A stretch of 64,000 nt of DNA from Pavona decussata (GCA_977016875.1 CDRNST010000185.1:558001-622000), one strand, 5' to 3'. Positions 11,801-22,121 are shown, counted from the first letter of the stretch. Numbers and translations: made by a program. Notes: generated from the letters alone by a model not told the origin.

Positions 11801-13730
11801 GATGAATGAATGTATAAATGGTTAATGCGGTTTGGAAATTTTTATGAAGTCATGCCTGGATCATTTTGGTGATCCTTTAAAACATAAAAAAAGATACTTT
11901 TATGGAATACTTCCAAACAAATTGCAATTGAACTTGTGAATTACTTGTACATTATCCTTAAATTCTTTAATTCAATTTATACTTTGATAGCTCAAATTTA
12001 TCGTTTGTGTAACGATTGTATTTCAAAGGTGTTGATCGCGAACTTTCAAACTCTACACTGTATTTCGACGTCATGAAACAGTGAAAGTGAAAATAGCGAA
12101 TATCGAAACTTCTTTAAACATATATTGTACGAAACAAAACTAGAAAAAGCGAAGGGCAAAAACTTCATTACAAAAAACTTCGTAAGATAAAGACGAAACG
12201 AAACGCGGAAAAGACGAATGCCCACACACCCTAAAATGCAACTAATATTTAGACCCGCTTATAAATTTAAGTACACGTAAAAAAAAAAAACGATATGAAT
12301 AATAATTGAACAATAGACAATTAGTTGAGAATGTTTGCTTGCTTGTTCCGAAAGGTGTTTGCTTCTTGCTTTAACCCCCTCGTGAACATTCTCCTCTCCC
12401 TCGATATGCACGAAGTTGCATGTCGGTAAGCTAAGAATAAGTCTCTTTGCAAATAATTAATTAACTGACAGTTTCCCTAATTCATTGTTTTGTCCAGTTC
12501 TAAAGGGCACACTTTCGACACGTTTCGATATAAAACGGTCGGTTGCACTTGAACTTTTGCTACTCATTCACGTCCGCGTTCTCCTGGATAAACTTCACTA
12601 ACTAAGGTCTTTCTAAGAGTCGAGCTATTTGTTTCTTGAGTTAGGCGAGAATAACCATTCTCTAATCCAGTGCTGCTCTCTGGAGCGAGCTGTCCTTCCC
12701 CTCTGTCCATGGAGAAAATTATTCAGTGTCAGCGGCACATCATCATTTGGATCCATGGTTTGATAAGTTTATGGTCTAAAATTAAGTTCATTAAAGCCTC
12801 TGCTCCAGTAAGAGCCGTCATTAGTTCTTCATCGTTGATGTCAGCTGATGGATGGCGTAGATCACTCGTTTGGCTTCTTTTATCATTATTTCATATACTC
12901 CCCCGAAATGAGGTACTAAAGGGGGTTGAAATTCCATTTCGTATGCTGATTCGCCGCTGACTTCTGAATTTTGTCCTTTACAGATTTATATTGTCAGTTC
13001 GCGCAACTCTTTGTCTGCTCCAACAAAATTTCCTCCGTTGTCGGAGAGAGCTCTTTGCGGAAGGCCTTTGCGATTTATCATCCGACAAATTAAAATGCGT
13101 TGAGAAACGAATCAGTATCCATCTCAAATGCGACATCTAAATGCATACTCTTGACAATAAGCAGGTGAATATTTTCTGGGTTTCCCTCTTTCCAGAATCG
13201 TAAATAATGAGCCAGCAAAATCTTCAGTAACGACGGGCTGCTTTTAGAGGTTCCTTCACTATTATCCTTGGTAGAGGCGTCATCAATTGCCAAGCTTGAA
13301 GTCAAATCGGCTAACTTTTGATTTGTTCCGTTAATGCGATGGACTTTCAAATGATAGTTTTTGACAATCAAAGTGGTAAATTAATGTACCCAAGGATGAA
13401 TTATTGGGAAAGGTGTTTCGTGTGGCGGAATGAACTCTGCGTATTTGAGGCGTCCGACAATGCGTAAAATTTCAGATTGAGCAGCTTTGATTTCTTCTAG
13501 AGAAATTTATCCGGCTGTTCGTTCTGCTTTGGGTAAACAGCAGTTATGCAGGAAGCGTTAAACAAACGCATGTTCCCTTGCGAGTCGCATCCACCTCCAA
13601 AATCGACGAGGTTCTAAGCATCAGTCTAATGACCTTTCTTTAGTGACTGCAGTCTCCGTACTTTCTTGACTACCTTAAATTTCAGGTTTGCTGAAACGCC
13701 CTCGTGATCGAATCTCTTTGTCGAAGAAGA

Positions 13731-14849
13731 AGATGTTTTAAAGTGTTGACACGACTCCTGCTAGTGTCGCCCATGTTGAGTACTTGACCTTTAGAGATTG
13801 GCTTTTTTATATCCCTCCCCTTATCTGAGTCAGAGAAGAGGCAAGTGTAAGATTCACATTCTTTATTAGAACTGTTCTCTAATGCTTTTATCATTCCTTT
13901 TACTTTCTCTAGTTTTTTGGTTAACGTCTCGGTAAGCTTTTTTAATGTTCTCATGTGCCTTTTTGGTGTCCTTGGCCGGACGTGAATAATTCTTGATGAG
14001 TCTGGAATCGTTCGTCTTCCTGCCTTTGGAAATGTTTGCTACGTTCTACTCTTCGTTGGTGGAAGCGCGTTAATGCGCCGACTAGTTTTTGTTCTGCGTC
14101 CCTTCGGATGCGGCTCACATCCATTTTAAAATCTTCGTCCGGCGTGATGTTCGCGCGAACGTTGTAGCGTAGCGATTTGGGACATGTTCTCTTCGCGGCG
14201 GCGTGCGCCTCCAATTTGGTGATAGATTCTATTTTTATAATTTGCTTTTCAAAGCTTTAGCGCCGTCATCTTGTCTTGGCCGTTTTCTTCGTTCGCTTCC
14301 TTGCTGTTCTTCGTGGCGACGCTTGACAATCGGCAGACTTTGTCCGCTCTTAGAATCTTCATCGGAGTCGGTGATGCTAATGTTGATGGGCCGGATTCAA
14401 GCATGCCTTCTTCAGTTAGTCTGAGGTTGCTCATTTTCACGTTCTAAAACAATACTGCAGTTTCGATTCTAAAGCGAATCTCTTTGTTAGTGTCTCTGGA
14501 ATGACAGTATTTCAACTGGTACCATTCCGTGCTTGATCTTGTTCTTGCCGTTTTTATAGGCGTTGTGAGGATCGAAAATTCTCGCTTGCTATTGGTTCTT
14601 TTGGTTGACCAATAGCTAGTATGATGCTTTGATCCACACAGAGTTGTGTTTCTTCTGAAGTTCTTTTTGCTGTTTTTTGGAGTTGTGAGGTCTCAGTCTC
14701 GTATAATGAAGTATTATAGGAACAGCATTCATGCAGCTGAAATAGCTCGCTATTCCTTTTTCTTTGCTGTGGTCTAGTAATTCTTGTACATGTTGATAAG
14801 TGGTGCTATAGGACGAAGCAGCACGGAGCTCTGCCTAAATATATCGCAG
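13731..14849 (-). mobile_element. Internally deleted (RT-less) unit of the Penelope-like tandem array
   Basis: It keeps the 5' region, the N-terminal ORF part and the 3' tail. The N-terminal part (...DIKK) joins directly to the ORF end at ~13800. Confidence 0.85.
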
Positions 14850-17800
14850 AGATGTTTTAAAGTGTTGACAGGCCTAACACCACTCCTGCTGGTGTCGCCC
14901 ATGTTGAGTACTTGACCCTTAGAGTTTGGCTCTTACAAGTATGCCTTTTAAACATTTTCCTCTCTGGTAGGATACAATCGGTGGATCCTGATAAATTTCT
15001 TTCAGCAGAGGTTGATTCTCGATTAAATGTCATTTGCTCATTAAGTTTTTTTTTAAGTTTGGCACTGATGGATTGTATTGTGTGGCAAAGGGAAAATATT
15101 TTCTTGCGCATTTTCTGTTTCTGACGAAGAGCCGATTTCCTGTCTTTAAATTGAACATCTGCGAGGACTTTATTGACCAGAAGATCTGCGTAGCCTCGTA
15201 CACGCAAACGTGATTTAAAATCTTTTATATTTTCTTCAAAAAGACTTTTGGAAGAACTGGTTCTTAAAAGTCTGAGGGCTTCGCGCTTGATAAAACCTTT
15301 CCTGATGCTAAGGGCGTGGCAGGAAGAAAAATGCGTGTATTGGAACGTCTCAGTTGGTTTGAAATGCGTTTTAATGTCAAAGACGTAGTCTTTGTTGAAT
15401 CTTTCGCCTTTGAATACTGTTGTGTCTAGAAAGTTTATTTATTTCTATGATACTTCAGCTGTGAACTTGATGGTTGTTTGGTGCCTGTTTGCGTCTAAAA
15501 TGAAAAGATCTATCTCCTCTCTTTTAGTGTCCCACAAAGAGAACACGTCATCGATGTATCTTTTCCACTCGAGTGGTTTCTTACTGCTCTTGTTGATTAT
15601 TTCTGTCTCTACTGCAGACATAAAGATGTTTGCGAAGGCAACCGCCATTTTCGTGCCCATTGCGGCTCCATGTGTTTGGAGATAGTTCCTCCCATTAAAT
15701 TGGAAGGAGTTCTCCTGAAGTATAAGTCTAAGTAGTTCTCTAAGAGAGTGTGTTGGTATCGGAGTGTCTTTTTTATAGAATGTTTCGTATGCCTTACATA
15801 CAGTGTCTATTCCTTCTTCCTGTGGGATGTTGGTGTACAGCCTAGTGACATCCATTGACACTAGAATTGTATTCTCTGGGACTTTAGTCCTCTCTATAAA
15901 ATTAATGAAGTCTGTCGTATCTTTAATGTGCGATTTCTGTGTTTTTGCTATAGGCTGAAGAATGTTGTCTATAAATGATGATATTCGTTCTTTAGGGCTA
16001 TCACATCCCGAGATTATCGGTCTACCGACCGGGTTTTTCTTGTGAATCTTTGTTAGTGTGTAAAACACTGGTATGCGAGGTTGGTAAGGTGTCTGAGGAA
16101 GCCATTTTGTGGTCATTTCGTCTATATGATGTCCACCTTGTAGGTCTTTGATAATATTTTGTAGTCTTTGGAATGTGTCTTTGACCATTGGTGCTTCTAG
16201 GGGCAAATAGTTATTTCTGCCATCGAGTTTTATAAGGCCCTCTTGTATCTTATCTTGTTTGTTGATAATGACCGTTGTTGTGCCTTTGTCTGCCTTCTTA
16301 ATGTTTATTTCAGAGTTTGTTCTCGACTCTCTAATAGCTTTACGCTCGTTGTACGACAGGTTAGGCTTTGGCTTTATAAGTTTAATCTTAGCGAGTTCTG
16401 TTTTAACTTCTTCTAGGAAAGTTTCTAGGGCAACTGATCTTTGAACTGACGGTTCCCAGTTGGATTGAACGTAGAACAGATGTGGTTCACTACTCTGCCG
16501 TGAAATATGTACTGGAGACGCATTCTTCTCGCGAATTGCTTAAAATCTAGTAGCAGTTGTTGCTTTACGCGTTTTTCTTCTATAATCGGCGTAGAGATGA
16601 ATTTCAGTCCCTTTGCTAGTAGATTTGTCTGATCAGTTGTCATTTTGTACTCTGAAAAGTTTTTGATGTGCTTCTGATTAGCGTCTGTTGATTTTCTAAT
16701 TTGATCTCGTCTAACGTGTTTTCTTCTCTCGCTATGTTTTTTGTTTCTAAATTTTCAGTTTTTTATATCACTCCCCTTACCTGAGTCAGAGAAGAGAAAA
16801 GTGTAAGATTCATATTCTTTATTAGAACTGCTCTCTAATGCTTTTATCATTCCATTTACTTTCTCTAGTTTTTGGGTTAACGTCTCGGTAAGCTTTTTAA
16901 TGTTCTCATGTGCCTTCTTGGTATCCTTGGCCGGACGTGAATAATTCTTGATGAGTCTGGAATCGTTTGTCTTTCTGCCTTTGGAAATGGTTGCTCTCTG
17001 CTCTGTTTTTCTGAGCTTAATCGTATTACGTTCTACTCTTCGTTGGTGGACGCGCCCTTGTTCTGCGTCCCTTCGGATGCGGCTCACTTCCATTTTAAAA
17101 TCTTCATCCGGCGCGATGTCTGCGCGAACGTTGTAGCGTAGCGACTAGGGACATGTTCACTTCTCGGCGTGCACCTCCAATTTGGTGATAGATTCTTTCG
17201 ATTCTTTTTTTAATTTGCTTTCCAAAGCTTTAGCGCTGTCATCTTGTCTTGGCCGTTTTCTTCGTTCGCTTCCTTGCTGTTCTTCGTGGCGACGCTTGAC
17301 AATCGGCAGACTTTGTCCGCTCTTAGAATCTTCATCGGAGTCGGCTAACAGCGACTTTTCCTCTTCGGCGTTTATGTCGTTAGTGTCAGGTAGCTCGGCC
17401 TCGCCTGATGTTGATGGGCCGGATTCAAGCATGCCTTCTTCAGTTAGTCTGAGGTTGCTCATTTTCACGTTCTAAAACAATACTGCAGTTTCGATTCTAA
17501 AGCGAATCTCTTCCGTTGTTGCTTTGTTAGTGTCTGTGGAATGACAGTATTTCAACTGGTACCATTCCGTGGTTGATCTTGTTCTTGCCGTTTCTATAGG
17601 CGTTGTGAGGATCGAAAATTCTCGCTTGCTATTGGTTCTTTTGGTTGACCAATAGCTAGTATGACGCTTTGATCCACACAGAGTTGTGTTTCTTCTGAAG
17701 TTCTTTTTGCTGTTTTTTGGAGTTGTGAGGTCTCAGTCTCGTATAATGAAGTATTATAGGAACAGCATTCATGCAGCTGAAATAGCTCGCTATTCCTTTT

Positions 17801-17889
17801 TCTTTGCTGTGATCTAGTAATTCTTGTACATGTTGATAATTGGTGCTATAGGACGAAGCAGAACGGAGCTCTGCCTAAATATATCGCAA
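14850..17889 (-). mobile_element. Penelope-like retroelement unit (3.04 kb): RT, no GIY-YIG; ORF disrupted
   Basis: NFS..LLAKGLKF, KADKG, KIHK..PVGRPIISG, MDVTRLYTNIP, GAAMGTKMA and RYIDD motifs. The ancestral ORF ran ~17462-14920. Confidence 0.92.
17476..17520 (-). ncRNA. Hammerhead-like motif (U4 to G core variant) just 5' of the element ATG
   Basis: aacaa CGGAAGA gauuc gcuuua gaauc GAAA cugcag UA uuguu, with perfect stems I and II. Confidence 0.6.
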
Positions 17890-20858
17890 AGATGTTTTAA
17901 ATTGTTGACAGGCCTAACACCACTCCTGCTGGTGTCGCCCATGTTGAGTACTTGACCTTTAGAGTTTGGCTCTTACGAGAATGCGTTTTAAAGATTTTCC
18001 TCTCTTGTAGGATACAATCGGTGGATTCTGATAAATTTCTTTCAGCAGAGGTTGATTCTCGATTAAATGCCATTTGCTCATTAAGATTTTTTTTAAGTTT
18101 GGCACTGATGGATTGTATTGTGTGACAAAGGGCAATATTTTCTTGCGCATTTTCGGTTTCTGACGAAGAGCCGATTTTCTGTCTTTAAATTGAACATATG
18201 CGAGGACTTTATTGACCAAAAGATCTAGGTAGCCTCGTGCACGCAAACGTGATTTAAAATCTTTTATATTTTCTTCAAAAAGACTTTTAGAAGAGTTGTT
18301 TTTTAAAAGTCTGAGGGCTTCGCGCTTGATAAAACCTTTCCTGATGCTAAGGGCGTGGCAGGAAGAAAAATGCGTGTATTGGAACGTCTCAGTTGGTTTG
18401 AAATGCGTTTTAATGTCAAAGACGTAGTCTTTGTTGAATCTTTCGCCTTTGAATACTGTTGTGTCTAGAAAGTTTATTTATTTCTATGATACTTCAGCTG
18501 TGAACTTGATGGTTGTTTGGTGCCTGTTTGCGTCTAAAATGAAAAGATCTATCTCCTCTCTTTTAGTGTCCCACAAAGAGAACACGTCATCGATGTATCT
18601 TTTCCACTCGAGTGGTTTCTTACTGCTCTTGTTGATTATTTCTGTCTCTACTGCAGACATAAAGATGTTTGCGAAGGCAACCGCCATTTTCGTGCCCATT
18701 GCGGCTCCATGTGTTTGGAGATAGTTCCTCCCATTAAATTGGAAGGAGTTCTCCTGAAGTATAAGTCTAAGTAGTTCTCTAAGAGAGTGTGTTGGTATCG
18801 GGGTGTCTTTTTTATAGAATGTTTCGTATGCCTTACATACAGTGTCTATTCCTTCTTCCTGTGGGATGTTGGTGTACAGCCTAGTGACATCCATTGACAC
18901 TAGAATTGTAATCTCTGGGACTTTAGTCCTCTCTATAAAATTAATGAAGTCTGTCGTATCTTTAATGTGCGATTTCTGTGTTTTTGCTATAGGCTGAAGA
19001 ATGTTGTCTATAAATGATGATAATCGTTCTTTAGGGCCATCACATCCCGAGATTATCGGTCTACCGACCGGGTTTTTCTTGTGAATCTTTGTTAGTGTGT
19101 AAAACACTGGTATGCGAGGTTGGTAAGGTGTCTGAGAAAGCCATTTTGTGGTCATTTGGTCTATATGATCTCCACGATGTAGGTCTTTGATAATATTTTG
19201 TAGTCTTTGGAATGTGTCTTTGACCATTGGTGCTTCTAGTGGCAAATAGGTATTTCTGTCATCGAGTTGTATAAGTCCCTGTTGTATCTTATCTTGTTTG
19301 TTCATAATGACCGTTGTTGTGCCTTTGTCTGCCTTCTTAATGTTTATTTCAGAGTTCGTTCTCAACTCTCTAATATCTTTACGCTCGTTGTACGACAGGT
19401 TAGGCTTGGCTTTATAAGTTTAATCTCAGCGAGTTCTGTTTTAACTTCTTATAGGAAAGTTTCTAGGGCAATTGATCTTTAAACTGACGGTTCCCAGTTG
19501 GATTGAACGTAGAACAGATGTGGTTCACTATCTCTGCCGTGAAATATGTACTGAAGACGCATTCTTCTCGCGAATTGCTTAAAATCTAGTAGCAGTTGTT
19601 GCTTTACGCGTTTTTCTTCTATAATCGGCGTAGAGATGAATTTCAGTCCCTTTGCTAGTAGATTTGTCTGATCAGTTGTCATTTTGTACTCTGAAAAGTT
19701 TTTGATGTGCTTCTGATTAGCGTCTGTTGATTTTCTAATTTGATCTCGTCTAACGTGTTTTCTTCTCTCGCTATGTTTTTTGTTTCTAAATTTTCAGTTT
19801 TTTATATCACTCCCCTTACCTGAGTCAGAGAAGAGGCAAGTGTAAGATTCATATTCTTTATTAGAACTGCTCTCTAATGCTTTTATCGTTCCATTTACTT
19901 TCTCTAGTTTTTGGGTTAACGTCTTGGTAAGCTTTTTAATGTTCTCATGTGCCTTCTTGGTGTCCCTGGCCGGACGTGAATAATTCTTGATGAGTCTGGA
20001 ATCGTTTGTCTTTCTGCCTTTGGAAACGTTTGCTCTCTGCTCTGTTTTTCTAAGCTTAATCGTATTACGTTCTACTCTTCGTTGGTGGACGCGCCCTTGT
20101 TCTGCGTCCCTTCGGATGCGCCTCACTTCCATTTTAAAATCTTCGTCCGGCGTGAAGTTCGCGCGAACGTTGTAGCGTAGCGACTAGGGACATGTTCACT
20201 TCTCGGCGTGCGCCTCCAATTTGGTGATAGATTCTTTCGATTCTTTTTTTAATTTGCTTTCCAAAGCTTTAGCGCTGTCATCTTGTCTTGGCCGTTTTCT
20301 TCGTTCGCTTCCTTGCTGTTCTTCGTGGCGACGCTTGACAGTCGGCCAACTTTGTCCGCTCTTAGAATCTTCATCGGAGTCGGCTAACAGCGACTTTTCC
20401 TCTTCGGCGTTTATGTCGTTAGTGTCAGGTAGCTCGGCCTCGCCTGATGTTGATGGGCCGGATTCAAGCATGCCCTCTTCAGTTAGTCTGTGGTTGCTCA
20501 TTTTCACGTTTTAAAACAATACTGCAGTTTCGATTCTAAAGCGAATCTCTTCCGTTGTTGCTTTGTTAGTGTCTGTGGAATGACAGTATTTCAACTGGTG
20601 CCCTTCCGTGGTTGATCTTGTTCTGGCCGTTTTTATAGGCGTTGTGAGGATCGAAAATTCTGGCTTGCTATTTGTTCTTTTGGTTGACCAATAGCTAGTA
20701 TGACACTTTGATCCACACAGAGTTGTGTTTCCTTTGAAGGTTTTTTTTGCTTTTTTTTGGAGTTGTGAGGTCTCATTCTTGTATAATGAAGTATTATAGG
20801 AACAGCATTTATGCAGCTGAAATAGCTCGCTATTCGTTTTTCTTTGCTGTGGTCTAGT
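17890..20858 (-). mobile_element. Second full-length Penelope-like unit, running into the assembly gap
   Basis: Colinear with 14850-17889 at a ~3039-bp offset. RT ORF 18484-19365; C-terminus SYKRGKSLKRILVRAKL-stop at 17959. Confidence 0.92.
20515..20559 (-). ncRNA. Hammerhead-like motif, same sequence in the next unit
   Basis: Identical to 17476-17520. Confidence 0.6.
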
Positions 20859-21755
20859 NNNNNNNNNNNNNNNNNNNNNNNNNNNNNNNNNNNNNNNNNN
20901 NNNNNNNNNNNNNNNNNNNNNNNNNNNNNNNNNNNNNNNNNNNNNNNNNNNNNNNNNNNNNNNNNNNNNNNNNNNNNNNNNNNNNNNNNNNNNNNNNNNN
21001 NNNNNNNNNNNNNNNNNNNNNNNNNNNNNNNNNNNNNNNNNNNNNNNNNNNNNNNNNNNNNNNNNNNNNNNNNNNNNNNNNNNNNNNNNNNNNNNNNNNN
21101 NNNNNNNNNNNNNNNNNNNNNNNNNNNNNNNNNNNNNNNNNNNNNNNNNNNNNNNNNNNNNNNNNNNNNNNNNNNNNNNNNNNNNNNNNNNNNNNNNNNN
21201 NNNNNNNNNNNNNNNNNNNNNNNNNNNNNNNNNNNNNNNNNNNNNNNNNNNNNNNNNNNNNNNNNNNNNNNNNNNNNNNNNNNNNNNNNNNNNNNNNNNN
21301 NNNNNNNNNNNNNNNNNNNNNNNNNNNNNNNNNNNNNNNNNNNNNNNNNNNNNNNNNNNNNNNNNNNNNNNNNNNNNNNNNNNNNNNNNNNNNNNNNNNN
21401 NNNNNNNNNNNNNNNNNNNNNNNNNNTTTTCTGGCCACTCAGTTTTCTTAAAAGAATTTTGGGCCTTGCCACCAGGTCTCATAATTGGCCAGCTCGGTTG
21501 CTGTCATACTTCTAGTTGGAAAATCGGCAGGATTTTCGTCCGTTGGGATACACATGCACTGTTCAGATCTAGACGCTTGAATTTCGGCAACCTGTTAGCA
21601 ACGAATGGCTTAAATCTTCGACTAGGATTGGGATCTCATTCGACACGACTAGAAAATTTAGAAGCCACTTTCGAGCATGCATTTCAGCTCCATGACACAG
21701 TTGTTTAACTGCTTGTAAAGTTCAATTCCTTGATCATCATTAGGCATCGAGTGCA

Positions 21756-22121
21756 GGCTTTCTTTTCGCACTTGCTTGAGTTGCGTATATAACTGCGATG
21801 ATCATTCACTTATTCATTCTCTCTTCTGCAGTTTAAAAACTTGAATGTTTATATATTCACTTTCATCTCATCAACGCAACTCTACGGGTATATTACAAAT
21901 TTATAACATGACTAGCTTCCAATTGGCTTGATAGCTCAATTGGTAGAACACTACAACAGTATCGCAGAGGTCATGGGCTCGAATCCCGTCCAAGCTTGAA
22001 TTTTTTTCAGGCTTTCATTTCGAAACTTTTTAAGTTGCGTATAAAACTGGGATGATCATTTACTTATTTATTCTTTCTTCCGCAGTTTAAATATATGAAT
22101 TTTCATATATTCACGTTCATC
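21756..22121 (+). mobile_element. tRNA-derived repeat flanked by ~115-bp direct repeats
   Basis: tRNA-like ggcttgatagctcaattggtagaaca...gggctcgaatcccgtccaagct (21925-21996) followed by a T-run. Direct repeats at ~21756-21868 and ~22009-22121. Confidence 0.7.

Follow-up and report, generated by a model that had tools for sequence, protein, structure and literature searches.

Penelope-like elements without a GIY-YIG endonuclease at internal sites in stony corals: a decayed tandem array in Pavona decussata and its intact relatives

The reverse transcriptases (RTs) of Penelope-like elements (PLEs) are the closest relatives of telomerase, and the integration of PLEs is poorly understood. According to the published rule, PLEs that lack the GIY-YIG endonuclease (EN) are found at telomeres, while those that encode it (EN+) are found inside chromosomes, with a few unexplained exceptions. 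An earlier reading of the DNA described here, made from the sequence alone, had relied on this rule. Two exceptions to it have been published, the Neptune-like MjPLE01 from kuruma shrimp and Chlamys PLE-X from Selaginella and Chara (Craig et al. 2021, PMC8557442). Both are EN-less offshoots of EN+ clades.

Like the coral clade, MjPLE01 and Chlamys PLE-X have a PLE RT without GIY-YIG and are not restricted to telomeres. In all of them, the nearest EN+ kin have a CX2-5CxxC linker and a CCHH EN, a combination that corresponds to Neptune under the criteria set out by Craig et al. (PMC8557442). The coral clade differs in being large, with many subfamilies and young copies, and in having its own N-terminal module and a conserved box in the 3′ UTR (MjPLE01 was compared by its description only). 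Athena and Coprina share with the coral clade the lack of an EN, the presence of a hammerhead ribozyme, an extended N-terminus and head-to-tail arrays of 5′-truncated copies. The 3′ ends of the coral elements, however, are free of reverse-complement telomeric repeats; the elements are located at internal sites and have a single fused ORF where Athena and Coprina have ORF1 and ORF2. Neptune-type EN+ PLEs are represented in the same genome by the family of L058 (L-numbers denote genomic loci and P-numbers database proteins). This family resembles the coral clade in its RT (37% identity, collinear as far as LVRAK), its hammerhead and its tandem and inverted insertions; it differs by 158 additional residues (linker and GIY-YIG), by a hammerhead downstream of the ORF and by the lack of a 3′ box. 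Finally, we propose an analogy to the endonuclease-independent insertion of LINE-1 at DNA breaks, in which the RT is primed by an existing 3′-OH and no target duplication arises. LINE-1 has a different class of RT, the coral elements have precise 3′ ends, and what is a rare side path for LINE-1 would be the normal state of the coral lineage.

The window analyzed here is a stretch of 64,000 nucleotides from Pavona decussata. It contains an array of an EN-less PLE at 13730-20858 on the minus strand, on which a blastn search of the unit against the window and a repeat finder agree. The array has the following components:

13730-13806, minus strand: terminal 3′ fragment, consisting of the last 12 nt of the ORF and the 3′ UTR, with the box partly deleted
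13803-14484, minus strand: 5′ part of the terminal unit, consisting of a hammerhead with a 12-nt deletion and ~680 nt that code for the N-terminus and have undergone several deletions
14482-17521, minus strand: full unit 1, 97.3% identical to unit 2, with a period of 3039-3040 (blastn)
17475-17523, minus strand: minimal hammerhead of PLE type with the core CGGAAGA (U4 to G); the ATG follows after 18 nt
17522-20560, minus strand: full unit 2, 3039 bp, with hammerhead, broken ORF and 70-nt 3′ UTR
17889-17958, minus strand: 3′ UTR, with the box GGAGTGGTGTTAGGCCTGTC at ~17907-17926 and the precise 3′ end of the element at 17889
17959-17961, minus strand: terminal stop codon of unit 2
20199-20510, 19797-20183, 19482-19793, 18487-19419 and 17962-18477, minus strand: the pieces of the unit 2 ORF
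17962-19419, minus strand: PLE reverse transcriptase with DKG motif, YIDD and thumb, ending in LVRAKL
19797-20510, minus strand: clade-specific N-terminal extension, an acidic disordered head followed by a helical-hairpin module (SLRY, PDEDFK, AEQ)
20514-20562, minus strand: second hammerhead copy, identical in sequence
20561-20858, minus strand: partial unit 3, 298 bp, the stretch between the 3′ end of the element and the hammerhead, 94% identical to 17522-17818 (blastn)

At 13730, the array borders on unique flanking sequence. At the other side, partial unit 3 runs into a gap of Ns (20859-21426) that hides the upstream end of the array; to the right of this gap, blastn of the unit against the window found nothing related to it. 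The terminal unit has a 1.8-kb internal deletion, and its 5′ part is followed immediately by the final 86 nt of the element. Three units with a common 3′ end had been described in the sequence-only reading. This is correct for the two full units, while the third contributes only the 86-nt terminal fragment.

Judged by their sequence, the window copies are a dead, non-functional tandem. The ORF of unit 2 is broken into five pieces by five premature stop codons and one frameshift, and unit 1 has an additional frameshift near the C-terminus. All five stop codons of unit 2 are found at matching positions in unit 1, where the dispersed relatives L003 and L027 have sense codons, and the U4-to-G mutation of the hammerhead is common to both full units. 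The shared stop codons and the shared hammerhead mutation argue that the array was multiplied from a copy that was already defective. It may have grown from one multimeric cDNA or by a later DNA-level duplication in place; either would fit. The possibility that a single dead insertion was later multiplied by unequal exchange, in which case the window array says nothing about integration, has close to an even chance. It agrees with the defects that are common to both units and missing in the dispersed relatives, and with the genome search, which found no other copy more than 95% identical to the window element. However, a multimeric cDNA made from one defective RNA would look alike, an internal point of the terminal unit is connected to the precise 3′ end in the manner of template switching, and young families have the same type of array. 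Because it was copied from a dead element, the window array alone cannot show how active elements integrate; as a dead copy, it matters only as an example.

The absence of an EN is best seen by comparison with an EN+ element of the same genome. L058 and the intact EN-less L004 (903 aa) are 37% identical over 454 residues (blastp). Their alignment ends at LVSAKL in L058 and LVRAKI in L004, after which L058 continues for 158 residues that comprise a CX3CxxC linker and the GIY-YIG domain. The C-terminus of the unit 2 ORF reads ...SYKRGKSLKRILVRAKL and is followed by the stop codon at 17959-17961. The stop thus comes directly after LVRAKL, collinear with L058 up to LVSAKL, and the RT ORF does halt at the boundary to the linker and GIY-YIG domain, as the sequence-only reading had stated. 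That reading was also right in seeing no GIY-YIG domain in the 3.04-kb unit, in which neither Pfam nor tblastn found one. The tblastn search with the linker and EN of L058 (E ≤ 10) covered the window and 30 EN-less loci and returned no GIY-YIG in or beside the elements (best E ~0.1). By Pfam, there is no nuclease in the ORF pieces of at least 52 aa from the non-coding stretches of the unit, in the whole 903- and 860-aa proteins of relatives or in antisense ORFs. A six-frame scan of the unit for the GIY-YIG motif had no match, but the regular expression also overlooked the true motif of L058, so that the absence of an EN is based on tblastn and Pfam. Precomputed Pfam labels are unsafe as an EN test, since P0115-P0119 carry a GIY-YIG C-terminus without the PF01541 label. 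The coral elements thus lack the C-terminal GIY-YIG domain in the same ORF, which is a feature of Penelope/Poseidon, Neptune, Nematis and Hydra, and also the N-terminal GIY-YIG domain of Naiad and Chlamys (Pfam, tblastn and an AlphaFold2 model of the N-terminus). Elsewhere in the window, at 62203-62621, there is a GIY-YIG PLE stub (tblastn, E = 7e-28), which had been noticed before.

A full element has ~3.0-3.25 kb and consists of a 413-454-nt leader, a hammerhead, one ORF and a 3′ UTR of 55-75 nt. The ORF begins with ~120 disordered residues, followed by a conserved helical hairpin, the PLE N-motifs and the RT with its thumb, and stops after LVRAK[L/I]. The tandem units of 3245 bp on contig C56 are fully explained by leader, hammerhead, ORF and 3′ UTR, and the same complete accounting of parts applies to L061, a single full-length copy from another coral assembly. 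The RT is confirmed to be of PLE type by the N-terminal GLKF and DKG motifs and by the thumb (Pfam DUF8422, RVT_1 and HTH_animal).

The hammerhead is found ~10-70 nt before the ATG in every family. Its core is CUGAUGA in L016, L026 and L061, CUGAAGA in L003 and L004, and CUGACGA in L023. Helices I and II and the palindromic loop of helix III vary between families yet remain complementary (co-variation). The window element has CGGAAGA, and as L003, which is 90% identical to it, has CUGAAGA, this is a decay mutation rather than a new ribozyme variant. The mutated core also accounts for the failure of Rfam to detect a hammerhead in the window array at E ≤ 1; the relatives have a weak match to Rfam HH9 and clear matches to the hammerhead motif.

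The box in the 3′ UTR (GAGTCGTG..GGCCTGTC) is kept across 12 families whose proteins are only ~60% identical. According to RNAalifold, the 3′ UTR is conserved in sequence, with no co-varying structure. The strict form of the box occurs 300 times genome-wide, versus none for a reversed control. It was found 36 times in EN-less loci and not at all in the one EN+ family of the genome that was checked. The 3′ end of the element falls on a precise base, 15-25 nt past the box, and the downstream sequence differs from copy to copy.

Young copies of family B illustrate how such elements are joined: the precise 3′ end is followed by a next copy that starts at full length, at position 2733 or at position 3100. 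Inverted head-to-head pairs are also seen (L008, L030). Partial tandem or inverted insertion with variable 5′ truncation, as is typical for PLEs, is thus present in the coral elements. Among the matches listed, all nine or ten close pairs of boxes on opposite strands are in minus-then-plus order, with the 3′ ends pointing outward; some are segmental duplicates of each other, which leaves about seven independent pairs. Some pairs, on C35 and C82, have identical flanks on both sides and may be inverted duplications instead of two priming events. L019 was considered as an insertion at the center of a pre-existing 225-bp palindrome. We dropped this reading because this “flank” is also found after the 3′ ends of other subfamilies, at C38:793935 and C86:1659560; it is a repeat in the inverted geometry of PLEs.

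No target duplication, short or long, was found in L008, L019, L061 and two box-defined pairs, as judged by the flanks only, with no empty site recovered. For L008, the assembled Logan contigs gave neither a clean empty-site joint nor usable RNA evidence. Among the 3′ flanks listed, the sequences vary, and neither (TA)n nor ATT is a common target. Neither (TTAGGG)n nor (CCCTAA)n was found in 63 loci or in the window, nor were telomeric repeats found genome-wide within 5-35 nt of the box, in searches with a tool that may skip simple repeats. Box copies are situated far inside contigs. An internal, non-telomeric location of the coral EN-less elements, which had been claimed for the window array, is thus supported.

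The mechanism that we propose starts at the box. The RT would begin cDNA synthesis at the 3′ end that is defined by the box, and it would be primed by free 3′-OH ends that are already present in the cell, often by both ends of one chromosome break. Priming at both ends would generate head-to-head pairs with outward 3′ ends and without target duplication. Template jumps, or multimeric templates processed by the hammerhead, would generate head-to-tail arrays of variably 5′-truncated copies. That the window array is a decayed tandem from an EN-less lineage, with box-initiated priming on existing 3′-OH ends as the whole explanation, we consider on balance likely. The absence of target duplications and the outward 3′ ends of the inverted pairs make us lean towards priming on existing chromosome breaks, which is our preferred reading ahead of a borrowed EN, but a tentative one whose chances fall slightly short of even. 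Inverted pairs and tandems are also normal for EN+ PLEs and are therefore compatible with an EN that acts in trans, which is a point against the proposal. In vitro, the protein of an EN+ PLE cuts and extends both strands (PMC11167929).

The EN-less elements could be mobilized by the EN of resident EN+ PLEs of Neptune type, which would nick both strands and leave the EN-less RT to prime there. Potential donors are plentiful, as GIY-YIG PLEs with long open frames are numerous in the genome (933 or more candidates at first look), and the tandem and inverted geometry is that of EN+ PLEs (PMC11167929). However, the nearest EN+ families in the genome are only 37-39% identical, and the one that was sampled has no 3′ box. 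The five insertions without target duplication and the heterogeneous listed 3′ flanks, with no common (TA)n or ATT target, also speak against this scenario, which we regard as rather unlikely.

In the sequence-only reading, the N-terminal extension was described as long, charged and unrecognised. It is indeed without a match in Pfam, and Foldseek with a model of the N-terminus returned nothing at E ≤ 1, but it is more than a charged stretch, as it contains a conserved, clade-specific helical hairpin. Among 267 PLE proteins, a profile of residues 95-320 matches the coral clade only. AlphaFold2, run with 35 sequences, predicts a disordered head (1-120), a confident helical hairpin (123-210) that surrounds an invariant TCPK.LRY loop, and further helices, but no strands. 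An Atlas search with the extension found only weak similarity to PLE N-termini and no nuclease, and ORF1 of the other EN-less clade (see below) has no similarity to the coral N-terminus. That the extension or a second ORF hides a nuclease that replaces GIY-YIG might be suggested by the ~320 clade-specific residues, among which L140, C149, P150, F167 and Y273 are invariant, and by antisense ORFs of 145-188 aa in three families. We consider this very improbable, because the model is disordered and all-helical without a beta core, none of the nuclease searches (Foldseek, Pfam, Atlas) had a match, and the antisense ORFs lack a Pfam match and are not kept in L061.

The lack of an EN characterizes a real and diversified lineage of coral elements. 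At least 128 matches were scored in a genome search with the RT piece. Open frames of 738-903 aa are present in several diverged families (60-68% identity), and each of these frames with a complete C-terminus ends in LVRAK[L/I] followed by a stop codon. Intact relatives of 860-903 aa, with the stop at a common residue, exist in the Pavona decussata genome and in other stony corals. Among the best 120 database proteins, 114 (53-94% identity) belong to the coral clade, including members from Montipora, Acropora, Oculina and Pocillopora, and nearly all of those with a complete C-terminus end at LVRAK[L/I]. Going by these proteins, the EN-less lineage is widespread in stony corals. The lineage is probably active; the copies of family B are 98.5-100% identical and have open 903-aa frames. 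The next proteins after the 114 are P0115-P0119 (43% identity), which have a GIY-YIG C-terminus. When P0115 is used as a query against the genome, the EN-less elements come first (with the RT part only), followed by EN+ families with 37-39% identity. No EN+ member of the coral clade was found in the genome by this search or in the tree. The sequence-only reading had taken the array to represent an EN-less lineage, as opposed to mere deletion derivatives, and this is borne out by the intact relatives, which stop at the same residue and in which the element ends 55-75 nt further on. That the copies are non-autonomous elements derived by deletion from an EN+ family, with an intact EN+ master to copy them, is suggested by the dead window copies and the 1.8-kb internal deletion in the last unit, but it is largely refuted and barely credible, because all intact relatives, even those with only 53% identity and from other coral genera, share the residue at which they end, no EN is needed to account for the full length of the 3.0-3.25-kb units, and neither the genome nor the tree contains an EN+ member of the clade.

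The coral clade was placed by two trees, one computed with FastTree on 156 RT sequences and the other with IQ-TREE (LG+C20) on 68, both without named PLE references. The broken ORF of the window was included with an X at the break. The coral clade comes out as monophyletic in both trees (SH-aLRT 100). It is separate from a Neptune-type EN+ clade and from a second EN-less clade, and the three make up an unresolved trichotomy. All EN+ neighbors carry the CX2-5CxxC linker and CCHH. The second EN-less clade, for which Atlas points to a rotifer-like affiliation, has an RT ORF of ~640 aa and, in the two contigs that were examined, a separate ORF1. Both contigs have matching ends, as is found in collapsed tandems.

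The 3′ box may itself be a trace of the lost domain. Situated 14 codons past LVRAK, it can be translated as C-R-P and, with the frame shifted by one base, as C-Q. P0141, an EN+ protein, has a linker zinc finger that begins with GCRPCQ at a matching distance from LVRAK. As the box sits where EN+ kin start their linker finger, the EN has probably been lost secondarily while the old linker was retained as an RNA signal, an argument that is based on ~14 nt.

It is tempting to combine these points into a self-sufficient, active clade of coral PLEs that has lost its EN and uses both ends of double-strand breaks as primers for reverse transcription to spread within chromosomes, with a box derived from the linker as a possible start signal for the RT. 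We put this forward as a possibility, and a somewhat doubtful one. If it is true, this patching of breaks would stand midway between the telomere-attached EN-less PLEs, or telomerase, on one side and ordinary intrachromosomal retrotransposons on the other. With its precise 3′ ends and hundreds of internal copies, this large and young EN-less clade is a tractable system in which it can be tested directly whether ordinary chromosome breaks can serve a telomerase-like RT.

Multi-copy arrangements of Penelope-like elements (PLEs) without the GIY-YIG endonuclease (EN) are also found elsewhere in the genome searched (G000):

C46:4102102-4105678, array with four copies of the box (the conserved motif of the 3' UTR), spaced by exactly 1165 bp
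C35:950932-951940, head-to-head pair
C82:1142233-1143282, head-to-head pair

The array on contig C46 consists of strongly 5'-truncated units, all from one EN-less subfamily. The pairs on C35 and C82 have the same structure at the two loci, and their outer flanks are identical on either side. Therefore, they are probably inverted duplications that include the flank, rather than the result of two independent priming events.

A second clade of EN-less PLEs is represented by two metagenome contigs, L062 and L063. In these, ORF1 (270 or 433 aa) is separate from the RT ORF, which is ~640 aa long, and a hammerhead is present in L062. Each contig has the same 120-140 nt at its start and at its end, as collapsed tandems or circles would.

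The window contains additional features outside the EN-less array:

1-671, tandem repeat at the window start (122-bp unit, 5.5 copies, 88% matches)
21925-21997 (+), tRNA-like sequence immediately right of the gap (N run), scored marginally above threshold by the Rfam tRNA model (31.6 bits), with no ARAGORN call
62203-62621, pair of GIY-YIG fragments in inverted orientation that derive from an EN+ PLE
62520 down to 62203 (-), minus copy of this pair (48% identity to the EN of L058, a Neptune-type family of the same genome; E=7e-28)
62523-62621 (+), short plus copy of this pair

Among the genome-wide box matches listed, the commonest subfamilies have a CCA-3' terminus, ending in ...CCCCATTATGCCA or ...ATTATTACCA, and several copies are adjoined by A-runs or (TAA)n/(TTAA)n. 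This terminus is absent from the window family, represented by the dead array copies (...AAAACATCTT), and from the young family B (...TATTATCA).

In three different EN-less subfamilies, the 3' end is immediately followed by one and the same repeat, which starts with TTCAATTCTTTTCT...GTTAATGTGTATAT (L019:3025-3250 and L019:456-650; C38:793935; C86:1659560). At L019, a locus of the EN-less coral clade, it is found on both sides of the element, in inverted orientation. The repeat may travel with EN-less PLEs as a passenger or be their preferred partner.
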